From positions 868,001-932,000 of the forward strand of contig JAPDFW010000092.1 of assembly GCA_028826165.1 (NCBI GenBank): a stretch of DNA of 64,000 bases, given 5' to 3'. Made by a program: the position numbers and the translations under genes. Below the pieces are notes generated by a model. It saw only the letters and a program-made list of their open reading frames with translations, did no database searches and was not told where the DNA came from. This DNA comes from Anaeramoeba ignava BMAN. Lineage: Eukaryota > Protista > Anaeramoebae. How positions within the stretch are numbered: the stretch's first letter is position 1; each line of letters begins with the position of its first letter. This document shows, one piece after another, positions 46,958-57,865 of this stretch.

Positions 46958-47164
46958 TAAGCAAATTTTTGTTGAAATAATTGTTTTTTTTTTTTCAAAA
47001 TTTGATGAAAAAAATTGTTCTATTTGAATTTTCTTTTTTTTTTTAAATAAAATCTATTGGATTTTAAATTGAATTTTTAATTTGTTTTTTGAATTTTTTA
47101 TTTGTTTTTTTTTTTGGAAAATGAATTGATTTGAAAAGAAAAAAAAAGAACAAAAGAAAAATTT

Positions 47165-47980
47165 GCCAAAATTAATTAAAATTGAAATTAAAATTGAATT
47201 TGAAATTAAAATTGAAATTGAAATTAAAATTAAAATTGAAATTAAAATTGAATTTAAAATTAAAATTGAAATTAAAATTAAAATTGAAATTAAAATTGAA
47301 ATTGAATTTAAAATTGAAATTGAAATTGAAATTGAAATTGAAATTGAATTTAAAATTGAAATTAAAATTGGAATTGAAATTGAATTTGAAATTAAAATTG
47401 AATTTAAATTTGAATTTGAATTTGAAATTGAAATTAAAATTGAAATTGAATTTGAATTTAAATTTGATTTGAAATTGAATTTAAAATTAAAATTAAATTT
47501 AAAATTGAAATTGAAATTGAAATTATAATTAAAATTGAAATTGAAATTAAAATTATTTGAATTTGAAATTGAAATTGAAATTAAAATTGAAATTGAATTT
47601 AAATTTAAAATTGAAATTGAAATTAAAATTATTTGTATTTGAAATTGAATTGAAATTGAAATTAAAATTAAAATTGAAATTAAATTTAAAATTGAATTTA
47701 AATTTGATTTTGAAATTAAAATTGAAATTAAATTTAAATTTGATTTTGAAATTAAAATTGAAATTAAATTTAAATTTGATTTTGAAATTAAAATTGAAAT
47801 TAAATTTAAATTTGATTTTGAAATTAAAATTGAAATTAAATTTAAATTTGAATTTGAATTTGAAATTAAAATTGAATTTAAAATTGAAATTAAAATTTAA
47901 ATTAAAAATTAAAATTGATTTTGAAATTAAAATTAAAATTATTTAAATTTGAATTTGAATTTGAAATTGAAATTAATTGT
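47165..47980. repeat. (GAAATT/AAAATT/GAATTT)n microsatellite between convergent genes
   Basis: Direct inspection. Confidence 0.9.
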
Positions 47981-47982
47981 GA

Positions 47983-50900
47983 TTATTTGAGATTCACATT
48001 CGAATTAGGCAAATTATTTTTTCTCCACTTTACCAAATTAGGATTTCTTGATAAAGTAAGAAGAACCAAAAAGCGACTTTTAACTTTTTGATGAAGAATA
48101 AATTCAGGTTTTGGTTCAATTTGATCTTCAATTTGGTCGATTTGTTCATCAGGAATTTTCTTACAACAACCAACAGATCTTTTAGCAAGTTGAAGCCTTT
48201 TTTTGTTTTTATCCTTAAGAATACGAGTAAACATGTTTCCAAAAGTAAAACGAATAGGATTATTATGGATGTGGTCCATATAGATCATTCCGACATATGA
48301 TCTGAAGGCTCTTTTGAGGAACCTGATGTTATGAAGGGTGTCGAGATCAACTCTGACATAATGGAACAGCGTGTAGTATAAGACTCTAAATACTCTTGCG
48401 GATGCAAAAGCGACGCCATAGAAGAAATTCAAGATTGTCCAAATAAATTCCGCACTTGCGAACCATTTGGGTTGAACAACGGAATTCCTGCGAACAAAAA
48501 CAGCCATCATGATCTCCCAGATCCGGAGCAAGAAAAACCCAACCATGAATATATAAAAGAACCACTTGAACAAGAACCAAATGATATCGAAAAACGGAAA
48601 GTAAAGAAGAGTCGAAACGATCGATGCTGTGATCAGCCAAAGAACCACGAATCCGTACGTAAAATGCGCCGCTGCTAACCCCGCAAATGAGGTAGCCCTT
48701 CCGGTGTTGGGTCTGTGCTTGCCGAACCTTACTCCTTGTCTCATCCACATGATTCTGCGGCGATAAAGTCGGAAAATCAACCACCAGATGAACAACATGA
48801 CCAAAAATAAAACAATTGCGCAGAACCTTCCCGAGAACTTCATAATGTTGATGAGTCGGGTAATCTGGCTCTCTGACACCCTGAAGAGATTCGACACCGA
48901 GTCGGGCACGCTTTTGATCTTCGCAGGATTCAGCGAGCTTGATCGGGTCACGGTGTAAAGTATGGATTCGTTGATCAACTGAATGATGTAATCCAATTTG
49001 TTTTGATAACTATATATATCATCCCGCCATTTCTTCAAATAGAACACAAACCACTCGATCAGAAGAAACGCGCCTGCCACGAAGTAAATGAGCAGCAGGA
49101 TGGATAAGCTCAAGGCAAGAAGCAAACGTTGTGGATAGAAGAATGAACACGATGGTTCAAATTTGTGATGTTGTGTTTTTTCTCGCGGCGCTAACCATGT
49201 CACAAGTCGCGATCGTGTGCTCAGCAGCATGTCTCCGAGCGATGCAAGCATCCCTTTCTGGACGCTTTTCTCGTCTTTCGGTTTGAAATTGTCTCGAGTT
49301 CTTTTCACTTTATTCCCTAAATTATCAAGTTCAATTTCCGATTCCGTTTCTATTTCCGAATCGAAGATGTCAACTTCCCCGATCTGGTTCGCAAACATTG
49401 CGTCCTCGTCCTTCTTGAAAAGATGCTTGACAAACTTGATATATGCGATTGTTTTGCGGTCGTGGAATTGCCATTTTCTTTTCATGAAAATGCCGAGAAT
49501 AGCGTTGATCCCAAACAAAAGAGCAAGAACATTAATGCAAATGATGAACAACGAAGTTACAAGTTGCAAGTACGGATTATCTCCGTCTTGATCCTGCTTG
49601 AAAGACAGTTTCTCAAGCGCCACATATCCGAAAAATTCTGGGACGCCGCATGCAAGAAATCCGATAACCAAAAAAATGTTTGCAGTTTTTGCTTCATTGA
49701 AAAAGAACAACGGAATAAGAGCAAGCACTGTAAGTGCAATGATTGTTTTCCATTTTCCAATGTATGAAAACGACGGTTGTGTTAATCCAATTACTGCAAA
49801 GTTGCTTTCATTAATAGAATGTATTCCATCACATACAAATATCAATTGGCAATCTCCTCCATTTCCTGATACTATCAAATCCGTGAACTGATATTCTCCG
49901 TTAGAATCAGTTTTTGTATTGTCTTCGTATGTTATAGACCCTCCTAAACATGACCCATTAAATTCAACACTGATTGTCTTGTTTGCTAATCCAGTGCCGT
50001 TTATTGATACAGCTTTGACTTTTGGTTGTTGTGGAAAAGGTTCTCCTGTTTTTGTCTTTTTTATTTTAAATCAAAATTAAATCAAAATCAAAATAAAATT
50101 AAATTCAAATTAAATCAAAATTAAATATTCAAATAAAATAAAAATATTCAAATTAAATCAAAATTAAAATAAAATTAAATTAAAATATTCAAATCAAAAT
50201 TAAATCAAAATAAATATTAAATTAAAAATAAAAATATTCAAATTAAATCAAAATTAAAATAAAATACTTACTTTTTTGGAAGGTGTTATCAATACATTAA
50301 CACCAACTACATCATTCGTTAAATTCACATGAATTCCTGTTGGTGTAATTTTATCATCAGCTTTGAATTTTACACAATAAAATCCTGATATTCCTGCTGT
50401 AAATTTCAATAGATTAAATACAGCAGTTCCCATACTTGATTCTGTTCCATAATATTGAAAAAGTAAAACAAAATTATTTGATTTTGTAATTTGAGTAGAA
50501 TGATATGGATCTAATTGTACAAAAGTATCATCTGGAACAGTTGCATTACTAGCACAAGCCATCTCTGAATTGTCAGAATGATACTGTTTTTTTTTTAATT
50601 TAAAAATAAATTATTATATTTAAATTTAAATTTAAATTTAAATACTGAAAATTATTTTTATTTTTATTTTTATTTTGATAATAATTTATTTACTCCTGAA
50701 ACAAATGCTGTTACTGATTTTCCATTCAATTCAGATTTTGTATAAATTTTTACAACTACTTCATACGATTCTGGAATATATTCACCAACAGTTGCATTAA
50801 CACTTGTTTGATTTTCATATTCAACAATATCAATATAAGCAGCTTTATCACTTAGTTCTACATAAAACAAAGTTGAACTACAAAATATTTAAATAATTTA

Positions 50901-53900
50901 ATTAATAATAAAATAAATAAATAAAATAAATAAATAAATATTCAAATAAAATAAATTAATAAATAATATTTAAATAATTTAATTAATTTAATTAATATTA
51001 TTCAAATAATTTAATTAATAATAAAATTACGCATTAACACCTCCAATAGAGGCAACAAAACTATATTTTCCAGTAACACAACCCTCATGTAATAAAATCC
51101 AAATATAACATTGGCCTTGATCATCTGTACTAAAATATTGCCAACTCCAAGAGCAATAAATGAATCCAGGAGGTTTATCAACCAAAGTAACATCTGGAGC
51201 AAGCCCTGATATATAACTGCCAAGAAGAGTTTCAGTTTGAAGAATTGCAGCAGATTCACTGTATGATTCAATAGTAAGATAAGATGAAATATCCGATAAA
51301 GCAGTCACATTAGTGATATAATTTTGCATACAAATTTTAGGAGTTAAACCTGAATAAATTTCATAACTTTCTCCTTCAGCAAAAACAAAATAAAGTTGGA
51401 AACAAGGATCTGGTGATTCAAATTCAACAATCATGAAATCATAAAAATACATTAACCCAGAATAGGTATATTCATATGAATAACAATCTTTATCAGGTGA
51501 TGTATCAGTGTGTTCATCTCCACAATAAAATGTAATTGTATATTCATCTTCATCTAATCCTTCAACATATGTTTTTAGTTTGACTCGCTGCAAATCCATA
51601 TAATTAGATGATTCATCTATAAGTGCAAGTATTGGAAAATAATCAAATTCTCGATTTAAAGTTGGTGTTCCAATATATGGAATTTGGACATAAGTAAGGG
51701 AGGATGCTATTTCGATATTTAAATTAAAATATTTAAATTAAAATATTTAATTTGAAATAATTAAATTAAAATATTTTTTATTTTGAAATATTTATTTTTA
51801 TTTTAAAATTATTTACCAACATTTGAAATTTGAAGATTATGATAACCTTCAAATCCTTCCATAAATATCCCATCAACCATAAAAAAATATTTGTAAATTC
51901 CAGGTTGATAAAAAATGAAGTTATCAAATTCAACAGTTCCTTTTTATTTTGAATAATAAAAATAATTCAAATAATTTGTTTTGATTAGAAACACATTATT
52001 TATCAAAGAAAATTTTTTTGTTAAAATTTGAAATAAAATAAACCATTATCATCAGTTTTATCAGATGTTTGAAATCCAAAAAATTGTCTTTCATTTGTGA
52101 TTCTATTTTCAACTAGATTTGCAGAACCACCTGATGTTAAAAAAGCAGATAAAGTCATATAAGAAACAAAAGTAGGATAATAATAAACGTAGAAAATAGC
52201 AGTTTTATTAGCAACAGGATTTGAATATTGATCTAATGCTCGAATCTAAGAATATAATTGATTTAAATTAAAAATAAAAATCAAAAATTAAAATTAAAAT
52301 TAAAAATTATCACTTTGAAATTCCCATTTGTGAAAAAATTTGTTGCTTTGGATTGAAGTGGAGCTTGTAATAATTCCATTTTTGTAACAGGAGTTCTAAT
52401 ATCAATTTTAATATCTTTTGAATAACATATATAATGACGATCATAAACACCAGATAAAACAAAACTTCCAGTAATATTATATCTAAATAATAAAATTAAA
52501 TAAGAAAATTAAATAAGAAAATTAAATAAGAAATAATTTACCCTTCAATAATCAAGTTATCTAAAACAGCAATTCCACTTGAATTTGTTGTAACATAAAG
52601 CCAATAAGGGAAAATTGTCATTAGAAGATTTGAAGGAGTTGAAAAAAGAATGTATATATCATTATTAGGTAAAGGTCTTCTTGCAAAATCAAGAACTCTA
52701 ACTGTTATTGGCGCAATATTCTTTCCAGATTCAATAGATGTTGGAATTTCTGATAAAATTTCACATGTCGACATGTATCAACGTATACTGTTGATGATTG
52801 AAAAACTGTCAAACTCAAATTAACACCAAGATCTATTGCCAAATCATCAATAGTAATTTCAATTCTAAATTCATTTGTTCCATTTGCTGCAGATCTAGCA
52901 AGAATTTCAGTGCTACAAATTCCATCAAAACTAATTTGAATTTTAATTTTAATTTTAATTTTAATTTTAATTTTAATTTTTAATTTTAATTTTAATTTAA
53001 ATTTGAATTTTAATTTAATTTTTATTTTTAATTTTTAATTTTAATTTTAATTTTAATTTTAATTTTAATTTTAATTTTAATTTTAATTTTAATTTTAATT
53101 TTAATTTTAATTTTAATTTTTAATTTAATTTTAATTTTAATTTTTAATTTAAATTTAATTTTAATTTTAATTTTAATTTTAATTTTAATTTTAATTTAAA
53201 TTTTAATTTTAATTTTAATTTTGAATTTTAATTTTAAATTTAATTTTAATTTTATTATAATTTTAAATTTTAATTTTAATTTTAATTTTAATTTTTAATT
53301 TTAATTTTAATTTTAATTTTAATTTTAATTTTAATTTTAATTTTGATTTTAATTTTTAATTTTAATTTTAATTTTAATTTTGATTTTAATTTTAAATTTT
53401 AATTTTAATTTTAATTTTAATTTTAATTTTAATTTAAAATACTCTGAAACTGTATCAATTGTTTGAATAACAACAACGGAATCATTTTGATCATAAGTAT
53501 TAATAGTTCTAAAATGAGGAACTTTTCCAGAAACTGGATTATCTTGAGAATCTAAAACACGAATTTGTAAAGAAGGATGCATCAAACCAGGTTGAGTTAC
53601 ATTATCACTATTAGGTGGCCATTCTTCATCAGGATCAAATAAGAAATCAAAAACAAATGTATCTCCTAAAATTTTAATATGATCCACTTTTGATTTCACA
53701 TAAATTAAGTTTGTTTCACTTGAAGATACTCCATCACAAACAAATGTAATTCCAAATGGTTTGCTTTGATTTGTACTTCCATCCATTGAAAATGCAAGAT
53801 TTTGAAATGTTGCTCTAATTATTTATTTAAATTAAATATTTATTTGAATTAAATATTTTTATGAATTAAATATTTATTTGAATTAAATATTTATTTGAAT

Positions 53901-56900
53901 TAATTATTTATTTGAATTAATTATTTATTTGAATTAAATATTTATTTAAATTAAATATTTATTTGAATTAAATAATTATTTGTAAATTAATTATTTATTT
54001 GAATTAAATGTTTATTTGAATTAATTATTTATTTGAATTAAATAATTATTTATAAATTAAATATTTATTTGAATTAAATAATTATTTATGAATTAATTAT
54101 TTATAAATTAAATATTTATTTGAATTAATTATTTGAATTAAATATTTGAATTAAATATTTGAATTAAATATTTATTTGAATTAAATATTTATTTGAATTA
54201 ATTGTTTATTTGAATTAAATATTTATTTGAATTAAATATTTGAATTAATTATTTATTTGAATTAATTATTTTTTTGAATTAAATATTTATTTGAATTAAA
54301 TATTTTTATGAATTAAATATTTATTTGAATTAAATATTTTTTTGAATTAAATATTTTTTTGAATTAATTATTTGAATTAAATATTTTTACCTTCCATTTG
54401 AATCTGTTTCTGTACTAATTGCATTGATTAAATGTTTTGTTTCTTCTTCTGGTAAATCAGAAATAAAATATGGAAGAGTTGAATTTAATTGAGTTGATAT
54501 CATTGCAATAACCCTTTTTCCTGCAATTCCAAATCCTATTTATAAAAAAATTAAATCATTTATTAAATATTGATTTTATTTTTCTTTTTTAAAAAAAATA
54601 TATATTTATGATTTTTACCATTTGAATCAAGAACTTCAACAACTGGTTGAGTTTCGAATGCTTCATCCTCAGAAATATTTGTTGGATAGGGTTGTGTGAT
54701 AATATTAACAGAATCAACTAAAATATTTCAAAATTAAATAAAAATATTATTAAAATAAAATCAAAATATTTCAAAATAAAATCAAAATATTATTAAATTT
54801 AAATCAAAATATTATTAAATTTAAATCATAATATTATTAAATTTAAATCAAAATATTATTAAATTTAAATCAAAATATTATTAAATTTAAATCAAAAATA
54901 TTAAATTTAAATCAAAATATTATTAAATTTAAATCATAATATTATTAAATTTAAATCAAAATATTATTAAATTTAAATCATAATATTTTTAAATTTAAAT
55001 CATAATATTATTAAATTTAAATCAAAATATTATTAAATTTAAATCAAAATATTATTAAATTTAAATCAAAAATATTATTAAATTTAAATCAAAATATTAT
55101 TAAATTTAAATCAAAATATTTTTAAAATTAAATCAAAATATTATTAAATTTAAATCAAATATTATTAAATTTAAATCAAACTATTATTAAATTTAAATCA
55201 TAATATTATTAAATTTAAATCAAAATATTATTAAATTTAAATCAAAATATTATTAAATTTAAATCATAATATTATTAAATTTAAATCATAATATTTTTAA
55301 ATTTAAATAAAAATATTATTAAATTTAAATCAAAATATTATTAAATTTAAATCAAACCATTTGTTAATATTTTTGTTGATTGATAAAAATTATCTTCAGA
55401 ATAAACCCAATTCATTAAATTTCCTTCACATGCAACTTGGAAAAATAGTTTTTTTGTATTTGTTGCTGTTACATTAATGTCAATAGTAATAATACCATCA
55501 TCATCAGAAGGTCCAAGTATTTCTTTTCCCATTAAATCTTAAATAAAATCAAAATAAAATAAAATTAAATAAATTTTTTTGTTATTTTTTTTAAAAAAAA
55601 TAATTGAAATTAATACAAAATCTTTGATTCATAAAATCACCAAAAATTTCCAAATCATTTAAAGCAAAAATTCTTAAATATTTTCCTGATAATAATTCAC
55701 CTGTAGTATCTTTAATTGTTGCATAAATTGGTTGATTAAGAAAAGATTCTCCGATTGTAATATTTTCTGGAGGATTTGAACTAAATTCGATTGAAGAAAC
55801 TAAAGTATTTTTTTTTTCAAAAATTAAATCAAAAATTTTAATATTTTTTTTTGATAATTTGAAAAAAAAATGATTTCTTTATTTCTAATTTATACCAGTT
55901 CCTTTAACTGTAATAAGTATTTCTATATCTGATAAAGTTCCGTTTGATTCAAAATATATAATATTTATTCCAGGATAAGCTGCAGCAAATGTTAAATTAT
56001 CAAAGTTAGCAACTCCTTCCTAAAAAAAATAAATATAAAATTAAATCAAATATAAAAATTAAATCAAATATAAATTAAATAAAATATAAAAATTAAATCA
56101 AATATAAAAATTAAATCAAATATAAAATTAAATCAAATATAAAATTTAAATCAAATATAAAATTTAAATCAAATATAAAATTTAAATCAAATATAAAATT
56201 TAAATCAAATATAAAAATTAAATCAAAATATAAAATTTAAATCAAATATAAAATTTAAATCAAATATAAAAATTAAATCAAAATATAAAAATTTAAATCA
56301 AATATAAAATTTAAATCAATTTTACTTCATTTGAATAAGAATAAGTAGTTCCAGAAAGAATAGGTTGATAAATTTTAAGTTGATTCATTGTTGTTAAAGC
56401 TACATCTTCTTCAATATATTCATCAGATAAAAGATCTTCTAAATAAACTGCTTCAAATCTTTTTGCCTGATTTGGATCATAATAATAAGCTTTTGCATTA
56501 ACTAAAACTCCTTCAACTCCTCTTTTTCCATCTTGTCCATAAACTTGAATCTTTTTGTTTAATTTTAATTTTAATTTTAATTTTAATTTTAATTTTGATT
56601 TTAATTTTAATTTTAATTTTGATTTTAATTTTAATTTTGATTTTGATTTTAATTTTTAATTTTGAATTTAATTTTGATTTTAATTTTAATTTTAATTTTG
56701 ATTTTAATTTTAATTTTAATTTTGATTTTAATTTTAATTTTGATTTTGATTTTGATTTAGATTTTGATTTTAATTTTAATTTTGATTTTGATTTTGATTT
56801 TGATTTTGATTTTGATTTTGATTTTGATTTTGATTTTGATTTTAATTTTAATTTTGATTTTAATTTTAATTTTAATTTTAATTTTAATTTTAATTTTAAT

Positions 56901-57865
56901 TTTGATTTTAATTTTAATTTTGATTTTGATTTTAATTTTAATTTTAATTTTGATTTTAATTTTGATTTTGATTTTGATTTTGATTTTGATTTTAATTTTA
57001 ATTTTAATTTTAATTTTTGATTTTAATTTTAATTTTAATTTTAATTTTAATTTAGATTTTGATTTTAATTTTAATTTTAATTTTAATTTAAATTTTAATT
57101 TTAATTTAGATTTTGATTTTAATTTTAATTTTAATTTTAATTTAGATTTTGATTTTGAATTTAATTTTGAATTTAATTTTAATTTTAATTTAAATTTTAA
57201 TTTTGATTTTAATTTTAATTTTGATTTACACTTGGTTGTGAACTAAGAGGAACACCAATAGTTGCGTCTGTAGAAGGAAGTTTAATAACTTCAACCTTTT
57301 TTAAGCAAAAAACAAACAAAGAAAAAAATTTTTTAATCAATTTCTTTATTTTGAATAAAATAAATAAATACTTTTGTTGGTTTGAAAGGAGCTGTTTCTA
57401 ATTTTTCTGGTCGATTCATAACTTCCCAAAATAATGTATATCCAGCAAAAGTAAAAACAGAAAGAAAAATAGTGATTGTTAACAATCTGCTTTTAACTCT
57501 ATCTCCAACTAAATCAAGAAGATACTATTTCCAAAATTTAATTCATTTTTAATTTTAATTTTAATTTTAGTTTTAATTCTTATTTTTAAATTAATTTAAA
57601 TTTGACTATTTCAAAAAAAAATAATTAAATTTTTTTGATTTTTAATAAATTTTAAATAAATTTTTAATAATGATCAAATTGTATTTGTTTTATTTTGTTT
57701 TATTATTTTTTAATTGAAAAATTTCTGTTTATTTTCTTATTTTGTTTTATTTTTTTATCTTATTTTGTTTTATTTTTTTTATATTATTTTATTATTTACA
57801 GGTGATCGAAGTTTCCCACAAGTTTTTGTTTGTTTATTATAAACAATTCCACAACACTTCCTCAT
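47983..57865 (-). CDS. Giant membrane protein (~1,900 aa, 18 exons): N-terminal TM anchor, ~10 Ig-like (Big/invasin-type) repeats, STRA6/RBP-receptor-like multipass C-terminal domain; one frameshift at ~52765
   Basis: Manual splicing from exon 1 (57800-57865, MRKCCG...) to exon 18 (47983-50055) through GT..AG introns. Repeat consensus V..I.I...P......G..F..QP.V.V.D..G....GK...TD.NG.A.F..L.F...F.CDG. C-terminus has FFYPQRLL, RVDL..L, Y.GM.Y.DH.HNNP...F and KSRFLVLLTLSRNPNL..WRK. Confidence 0.8.

Follow-up and report, generated by a model that had tools for sequence, protein, structure and literature searches.

The M0811_01983 locus and its transcript

The stretch analyzed here—64,000 nt of contig JAPDFW010000092.1 of Anaeramoeba ignava, hereafter the window—contains on its minus strand, at 47983–57865, the coding region of the gene M0811_01983 (ATG at 57865–57863, stop at 47985–47983), whose product carries a long array of immunoglobulin (Ig)-like repeats followed by a membrane core related to animal STRA6. 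All of the elements that an earlier note, made from the sequence alone, had described between those coordinates were present, and the non-animal eukaryote that it had supposed is an anaerobic, free-living amoeba. Splicing at GT..AG borders joins a chain of open minus-strand segments, from 57865 to 47983, into a single reading frame, and an initial model of 19 exons and 1890 codons gave a translation equal to the public entry KAJ5071001.1 / A0A9Q0LD70 ("hypothetical protein M0811_01983", 1890 aa). A complete open reading frame (ORF) derived from the EukProt EP01156 transcriptome (P0138, 1913 aa), which belongs to the same 90% cluster as KAJ5071001.1, matched 1889 of the 1890 residues of the latter from Met1 to the last residue, with all the junctions colinear and one substitution. 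P0138 carries 23 more residues than the public protein, between ...VFQSST and NIAPITV..., whose source is the 68 nt at 52788–52721. Because P0138 reads through this segment, which is "intron 11" of KAJ5071001.1, the true model has 18 exons and a product of ~1913 residues, in agreement with the exon number of the earlier note; the public model reaches 19 through this pseudo-intron. The segment has, moreover, an exon-like 32% GC, against the 1–13% of the other 17 introns, and on these two grounds we rejected it as an intron.

Since the single transcript ORF covers both parts, the Ig exons and the multipass exon belong to one message and not to separate transcripts. A single read run contained the stretch, with a word share of 0.56 compared to an exon fraction of 0.55 (exons counted within 49500–55400). 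M0811_01983 is a real, transcribed 18-exon gene of A. ignava encoding a membrane protein of ~1913 residues. Bacterial contamination, for its part, was rejected in view of the 17 AT-rich spliceosomal introns and of a genome of ~20% GC.

The exon coordinates, all on the minus strand, rest on the frame-consistent GT..AG model together with P0138. Exon 1 (57800–57865) encodes the basic, Cys-bearing and putatively cytoplasmic N-terminus, MRKCCG..., while exon 2 (57372–57524) continues the motif P.(F/L)LDL..DRV.R, which begins in exon 1 at 57802, and then encodes the anchor helix TM0 (57429–57485); Ig repeat 1 begins in exon 3 (57230–57295). There follow exons 4 (56326–56550), 5 (55896–56019), 6 (55617–55799), 7 (55358–55537; donor GTTTGA), 8 (54619–54717), 9 (54391–54535), and 10 (53443–53814). 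Exon 11 (52542–52930) is transcribed as one piece, but is interrupted in the public model by the pseudo-intron 52721–52788, a segment that is really coding. After exons 12 (52314–52482; donor GTGATA), 13 (52044–52245; donor GTTTAT), 14 (51817–51939), 15 (51031–51706; repeat 7 and most of repeat 8), 16 (50694–50877), and 17 (50272–50583) comes the last one, exon 18 (47983–50055), which alone maintains about 690 open codons (an ORF of 695 aa), taking in the greater part of Ig repeat 10 and all of the STRA6-like core with its Pfam match.

The P0138 peptide ...CRHV|EILSEIP... demands one base (G) beyond the assembly, between 52762 and 52761, at a site located directly after the perfect 14-nt palindrome ACATGTCGACATGT (52763–52776); the assembly contains at 52761/52762 either a 1-nt error or a frameshifted allele. 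Were that frameshift genuine in the genome, the locus might be a decaying copy, no longer functional, and the assembly is indeed one base short of the transcript, a gap that the public model bridges with an artificial intron. Nevertheless, the transcript ORF is complete over its 1913 aa, the gene is otherwise without stop or frameshift across 5.7 kb with every splice site intact, and the gap adjoins a palindrome that is a plausible site of assembly error, so that we consider a pseudogene very improbable.

Homology of the C-terminal core to STRA6

The earlier note had described the C-terminal part of the protein as STRA6-like. With the last exon as query, Pfam reported RBP_receptor (PF14752) at 48019–49173 on the minus strand, with 36.7 bits (gathering 25), an E of 2.8e-9, and profile positions 232–604 of 605, and the family was likewise above cut-off when KAJ5071001.1 was the query. 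Neither a word-index protein search with the last exon nor a phmmer search of the single sequence against the PDB returned a match; an exhaustive HMMER search, in turn, matched 137 proteins, one of which, from a brachiopod, bears the name STRA6 (E 4.7e-4). The profile A1, a 52-sequence core alignment in which 46 members pass PF14752 on their own, matched zebrafish STRA6 (5sy1_A) with an E of 2.2e-45 over STRA6 residues 106–650. Because A1 includes animal sequence (at least one member), we made another search with the profile A2, consisting of 14 forms with lengths of 1167 aa or more, in which the source-named members are all protist and the others are unnamed, and this profile matched 5sy1_A with an E of 2.2e-30 over STRA6 residues 341–653.

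An AlphaFold2 (AF2) model of the core with A1 as the alignment had a pLDDT of 78.9 and a pTM of 0.75, the single-sequence AF2 model having a pLDDT of 49. When the former was used in Foldseek, 5sy1_A was the sole PDB chain below E 0.001 (1.2e-6), with the runner-up at E 0.8; and when residues 37–603 of the model were compared with 5sy1_A 89–630 in VIA-align, 434 residues were aligned with Z 14.4 and a root-mean-square deviation (rmsd) of 7.3 Å, whereas the next-ranked entries were generic four-helix bundles with Z 10 over ~120 residues. A search with language-model features also led to STRA6 clusters, at 0.94. Matches to STRA6 were thus found in profile as well as in structure, and the designation as STRA6-like stands. 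Of the two outcomes that the earlier note had named as fatal to its reading, the lack of any such match and separate genes for the Ig and multipass exons, neither occurred.

The motifs quoted in the earlier note—FFYPQRLL, RVDLDTL...MDHIHNNPIRFTF, and KVKSRFLVLLTLSRNPNLVKWRK—were found on family-conserved columns that align with zebrafish STRA6. The FFYPQRL helix (49087–49143) lies at the start of the PF14752 match, inside which W..F..YR..I..MRQG and RVD...MDHIHNNP also occur, and the C-terminal helix KVKSRF..TLSRNPNLVKWRK (48019–48087) is the counterpart of the calmodulin-binding helix BP2 of STRA6. The homologous core extends from the TM3 equivalent (TM, transmembrane helix) to the BP2 helix, that is, over STRA6 residues ~106–650, and shares with STRA6 the motifs F.(Y/F)P.(R/K)L, which starts the TM6 equivalent, R.D...D.G..Y......NP, and R.RW.L..TL.NNP.L..RK. 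These comparisons show that the C-terminal ~590 residues are homologous to STRA6 in sequence and, according to the model, in predicted fold as well; the membership in the STRA6 / RBP_receptor family is established.

That the finding would have arisen from two genes wrongly joined, or from a chance similarity to STRA6 among helical membrane proteins, is a supposition in whose favor nothing was found beyond the failure of the word search and of the single-sequence PDB search. We rejected the former possibility given that P0138 spans both parts, that repeat 10 and the core share an exon, and that the same fusion occurs in paralogues and in distant protists; and the latter given profile E-values of 1e-30 to 1e-45 with STRA6 as the unique top fold match. 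Consequently, we grant this supposition next to no credence.

The Ig-like repeat array

The middle part of the protein is encoded on the minus strand at 49786–57295, as delimited by the repeat alignment and a hidden Markov model (HMM), and is probably extracellular. Residues 74–1313 align as ten repeats of 104–141 aa each, beginning at window positions 57295, 55896, 55358, 53690, 52788, 52388, 51817, 51317, 50846, and 50313 (R1–R10, respectively), with the common pattern V..V.I...P..N.T.G..F...P...V.D....L.GK ... TD..G...F..L ... F..DG. The HMM of the ten repeats recovered exactly ten domains in the protein itself, a result that is circular there; as an independent check, it found ten domains in each of five Anaeramoeba paralogues, bearing out the approximate number of ten in the earlier note, and 5–8 domains in Luapelamoeba, Pelomyxa, Thecamonas, Cantina, and Sulcionema, in every case located after the anchor and before the core.

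As to the domain class, when Pfam was run on the whole protein no repeat reached its cut-off, the best being CarboxypepD_reg with 22 bits (32.3) and MG4 with 18.5 (24.7), and when it was run on ten single-exon translations no Ig family was obtained, with faint CarboxypepD_reg and MG4 signals in the last repeat only. With phmmer the last repeat matched multi-repeat proteins down to E 1e-22, which proteins Pfam calls CarboxypepD_reg, Invasin_D3, Big_1, and Big_2. Similarly, the repeat HMM scored 300 and 221 bits, with 15 and 14 domains, in the metagenomic proteins P0010 and P0014, respectively, both assigned by Pfam to Invasin_D3, Big_1, and CarboxypepD_reg. An hhalign comparison of the repeats with domains of the Big_1/Invasin_D3/CarboxypepD_reg type gave 91% (E 1e-6) and 64% (E 7e-5), and a language-model search with repeats 3–6 led to Big_1, Invasin_D3, and Ig_SMCHD1_6th clusters at 0.88–0.92; among PDB sequences, the repeat profile had no significant match and reached only S-layer proteins at E 0.06. 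From these profile comparisons, the middle part of ~1250 residues is shown to be formed by ten Ig-like domains that share homology with the Big_1/Invasin_D3 class. The "bacterial-type Ig" of the earlier note is accordingly upheld at the level of profile homology, though not at that of the Pfam cut-offs, none of which was passed; the term is fair as the name of a domain class, and these sequences provide no evidence for a recent transfer.

The repeats have in common with those of bacterial adhesins of the invasin/intimin type (Pfam Big_1, Invasin_D3) the pattern V.D..GNP..G..V......T.TD..G.A.F..L....G., and the same matches also score CarboxypepD_reg and MG4. Unlike the bacterial domains, however, those of A. 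ignava are longer (104–141 aa), bear variable inserts, and remain below the Pfam gathering scores; and the array is part of an intron-rich eukaryotic gene, in which it would form a loop between membrane spans instead of a free stalk.

N-terminus, anchor helix, and membrane topology

The layout of the protein is, in order, a basic Cys-bearing N-terminus, one anchor helix, the ten Ig-like repeats, three helices, and the STRA6-like core. Residues 1–35, which start with the MRKCCG that the earlier note had read, contain 9 K/R versus 2 D/E and 3 Cys, and are followed by the anchor TM0 (residues 36–54), which by hydropathy is the sole hydrophobic helix ahead of residue 1325, as the single N-terminal helix of that note would have it. 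Directly before this helix lies the motif P.(F/L)LDL..DRV.R (57486–57802, residues 22–35), conserved in the long forms from Anaeramoeba, Pelomyxa, Luapelamoeba, Cantina, and Sulcionema (N-termini of P0003, P0006, P0016, P0033, P0076, and P0144). The profile of this conserved N-terminal module matched nothing in the PDB, and gave no link to TM1–TM2 of STRA6. The repeat array is acidic and contains 25 N-glycosylation sequons, compared with 12.9 expected from shuffling, the core having one sequon.

The three transmembrane helices after the array (49495–49752, minus strand), recognized by hydropathy, align by profile with STRA6 residues 106–206, which we take to be TM3–TM5, and would stand in for those helices; the third of them is succeeded by residues of strongly basic character, after which an acidic, disordered loop leads to the conserved core. 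The distribution of charges is in keeping with an N-terminus and loops beyond the third helix that lie in the cytoplasm, and with an Ig array that is outside the cell and tethered at either end, for which reason we propose that TM0 is a type II anchor, that the Ig array would constitute a giant extracellular loop, and that the basic N-terminus, the C-terminal helices, and the acidic loop, which is long, would be cytoplasmic. The tethering at both ends, already advanced in the earlier note, is consistent with the hydropathy and charge profiles, with where the sequons lie, and with the conservation of the N-terminal anchor. The three helices which that note had counted before the TM6 equivalent are the ones aligning with STRA6 106–206, but with the N-terminal anchor the total is four. 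Since four helices, anchor included, precede the TM6 equivalent, the N-terminus should be cytoplasmic, unlike that of STRA6. Furthermore, in contrast to STRA6 (~670 aa), the A. ignava protein displays before the core an N-terminus with a conserved motif, an anchor helix, and a ten-Ig array of 1250 residues, and also possesses the long acidic loop, apparently cytoplasmic. An unrelated N-terminal module plus the anchor helix thus occupy the place of STRA6 TM1–TM2.

Conserved residues and the BP2-like helix

Among the family-conserved residues, P229, Q230, R231, W345, Y352, R360, G362, D491, D515, N519, and P521 are kept in M0811_01983, while in the D.G(F/Y) motif the nearly invariant D is changed to K and the G to A. 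The 29-residue STRA6 BP2 peptide 5k8q_B was matched by A1 (E 6e-5) as well as by A2 (E 1.8e-4), the BP2 sequences being quoted in PMC12714816. The BP2-like helix is conserved at the sequence level, and the core might be coupled to calmodulin. The A. ignava genome has numerous genes for calmodulin-like 4-EF-hand proteins; we inspected two intronless ORFs of the 4-EF-hand type, and both were calmodulin-like, with one of them scoring 78 bits against calmodulin.

Apart from these, at C131:79524–89348 there are at least four open frames of ~300 codons within 10 kb, each with several EF-hand pair matches, suggestive of multi-EF-hand proteins arrayed in tandem.

Paralogues and occurrence among protists

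The A. ignava genome (42.8 Mb) contains 26 places matching the family, corresponding to about 24 loci, in about a dozen of which the core lies within an open frame of more than 1,000 codons. The closest relative of M0811_01983, the C8 paralogue, has 61% identity to it in the core, the other relatives having only 15–30%. Several distant protist lineages share this architecture: long forms laid out in the same way were found in A. flamelloides, in Amoebozoa (Pelomyxa, Luapelamoeba), in an apusomonad, in a stramenopile, and in a diplonemid, and shorter forms in Soliformovum and in a cryptophyte, whose protein is named STRA6 by UniProt. The long-form relatives—A. ignava KAJ5076061.1 and KAJ5069899.1, A. 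flamelloides KAJ3425534.1, Pelomyxa schiedti KAH3755904.1, Thecamonas trahens XP_013756640.1, and transcript ORFs of Luapelamoeba, Cantina, and Sulcionema, all of them unnamed or "hypothetical"—resemble M0811_01983 in having the N-terminal motif, the anchor helix, 5–10 detectable Ig repeats (all ten in the tested Anaeramoeba paralogues, as in M0811_01983), the three helices, and the STRA6-like core. They differ in that M0811_01983 and C8 bear unusual substitutions at conserved positions. In a quick tree the Anaeramoeba sequences grouped together with support below the 95% mark, and the deep branches were unresolved, because of which we make no claim on the branching position of animal STRA6.

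Another A. ignava paralogue of the family, KAJ5068224.1 (P0033; 2009 aa, with Ig repeats and the STRA6-like core), is publicly named "RNA polymerase iii transcription initiation factor b", which looks like a misannotation.

Functional interpretation

Taken as a whole, these observations are in our opinion best explained, with a confidence that is moderate, by a STRA6 relative with an Ig array, the topology deduced above, and a STRA6-like mechanism. By analogy with STRA6, the core would be a dimeric membrane domain with a cleft opening sideways into the bilayer, through which a hydrophobic molecule might travel between the membrane and a donor outside the cell. The donor for vertebrate STRA6 is the plasma retinol carrier, the retinol-binding protein (RBP) (PMC4584289). 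In the A. ignava protein the docking of a soluble carrier might be taken over by the Ig array, which would itself bind the donor—a particle, a bacterium, or a matrix. The core, in turn, might be regulated by a calmodulin-like protein bound to the BP2-type helix, which is conserved. A role in lipid uptake could be derived from the same analogy. This particular mechanism, with the passage of a hydrophobic ligand, the array as donor binder, and the calmodulin-like regulation, we put forward tentatively, as the likeliest of the mechanisms considered, but one to which we would give clearly less weight than to the general explanation that includes it.

Several points weigh against that explanation. 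The superposition of the model on 5SY1 was loose, with a global TM-score of 0.41 and an rmsd of 7–11 Å. STRA6 is said, in a description of 2016 by Chen and co-workers, to have nine helices, five of them in an N-terminal domain, and an N-terminus outside the cell, a topology that the present protein does not reproduce: the three helices align with STRA6 106–206, and no counterpart of TM1–TM2 was detected. In the quick tree M0811_01983 and C8 formed a divergent pair on a separate long branch with a stem length of 1.41, and both carry K-R-A in place of the D-x-G that is nearly invariant in the family and in STRA6. In the BP2-like helix, STRA6 and the majority of the aligned long forms show a W that is F in these same two proteins; a few other paralogues have F or I at this position. 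A canonical calmodulin was not identified in the A. ignava genome, where an intron-split one may be present. The frameshift at 52761/52762 is present in the assembly. Finally, RBP is not known outside vertebrates and, because of this, the cargo cannot equal the vertebrate one, nor can the donor for the A. ignava protein be vertebrate RBP4.

The principal rival is a receptor for adhesion or particle recognition, whose Ig array would bind prey, symbiont bacteria, or substrate, with the core acting as a mere anchor or as a signal transducer to calmodulin-like proteins, without any transport of hydrophobic ligands. Such a receptor would agree with the homology of the ectodomain to the Ig domains of bacterial adhesins, with the existence of ~24 diverged members, as expected of a recognition repertoire, and with the loss of the nearly invariant D-x-G from the core of M0811_01983; but the core motifs are intact across supergroups, from the FYPQRL helix to the BP2-like helix, which exceeds the needs of an anchor. 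We hence regard this alternative as unlikely, although to be taken seriously, and continue to favor the STRA6 relative with a STRA6-like mechanism.

To date, the literature regards STRA6 as an apparatus peculiar to vitamin A physiology in animals, and when we searched it for STRA6 or its Pfam/InterPro identifiers together with protist terms, we found no paper linking STRA6 to Anaeramoeba or to other protists. Two limits should be kept in view: the protein was already public as a hypothetical protein, with a Pfam match that could be found automatically, and M0811_01983 is one divergent member among the ~24 in its genome. Nonetheless, the present results place the STRA6 core as old and widespread in unicellular eukaryotes, where it is found inside a much larger protein with an adhesin-like arm, and the family offers a concrete route to ask what role the fold had before RBP, and whether the calmodulin switch is ancestral. 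In an extreme version, which strikes us as improbable, the Ig-array form would be ancestral in the STRA6 family—a surface machine of early eukaryotes—and animal STRA6 a stripped-down derivative. If that were true, an invasin-like arm would grip the bacterium or particle while a STRA6-type cleft, open to the membrane, drew hydrophobic molecules from it under Ca2+/calmodulin control, and the two dozen diverged Anaeramoeba copies would represent a repertoire with which lipids or quinone-like compounds are obtained from prey or sulfate-reducing symbionts.

Base composition of the locus and its introns

The window has 19.6% GC. The long ORFs at 47163–47946 and 56595–57246 were discarded as genes, these being translations of AT-rich microsatellites (KLKL.., ILIL.., NFNF..). 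The last exon has 40% GC, with up to 46% in 500-nt windows, and the other exons of the gene 25–38%; the core of most of the paralogues has 22–29% GC, and only three other loci among those compared (L002–L026) reach 35–41%.

Five of the 17 introns, at 52932–53435, 53816–54386, 54720–55356, 56027–56319, and 56558–57227, are filled nearly end to end by tandem arrays, a different one in each, whose periods are, in the same order, 6, 17, 22, 18/55, and 6 nt, with 16–111 copies and 85–93% match. The remaining introns are short, with lengths of 59–275 nt.

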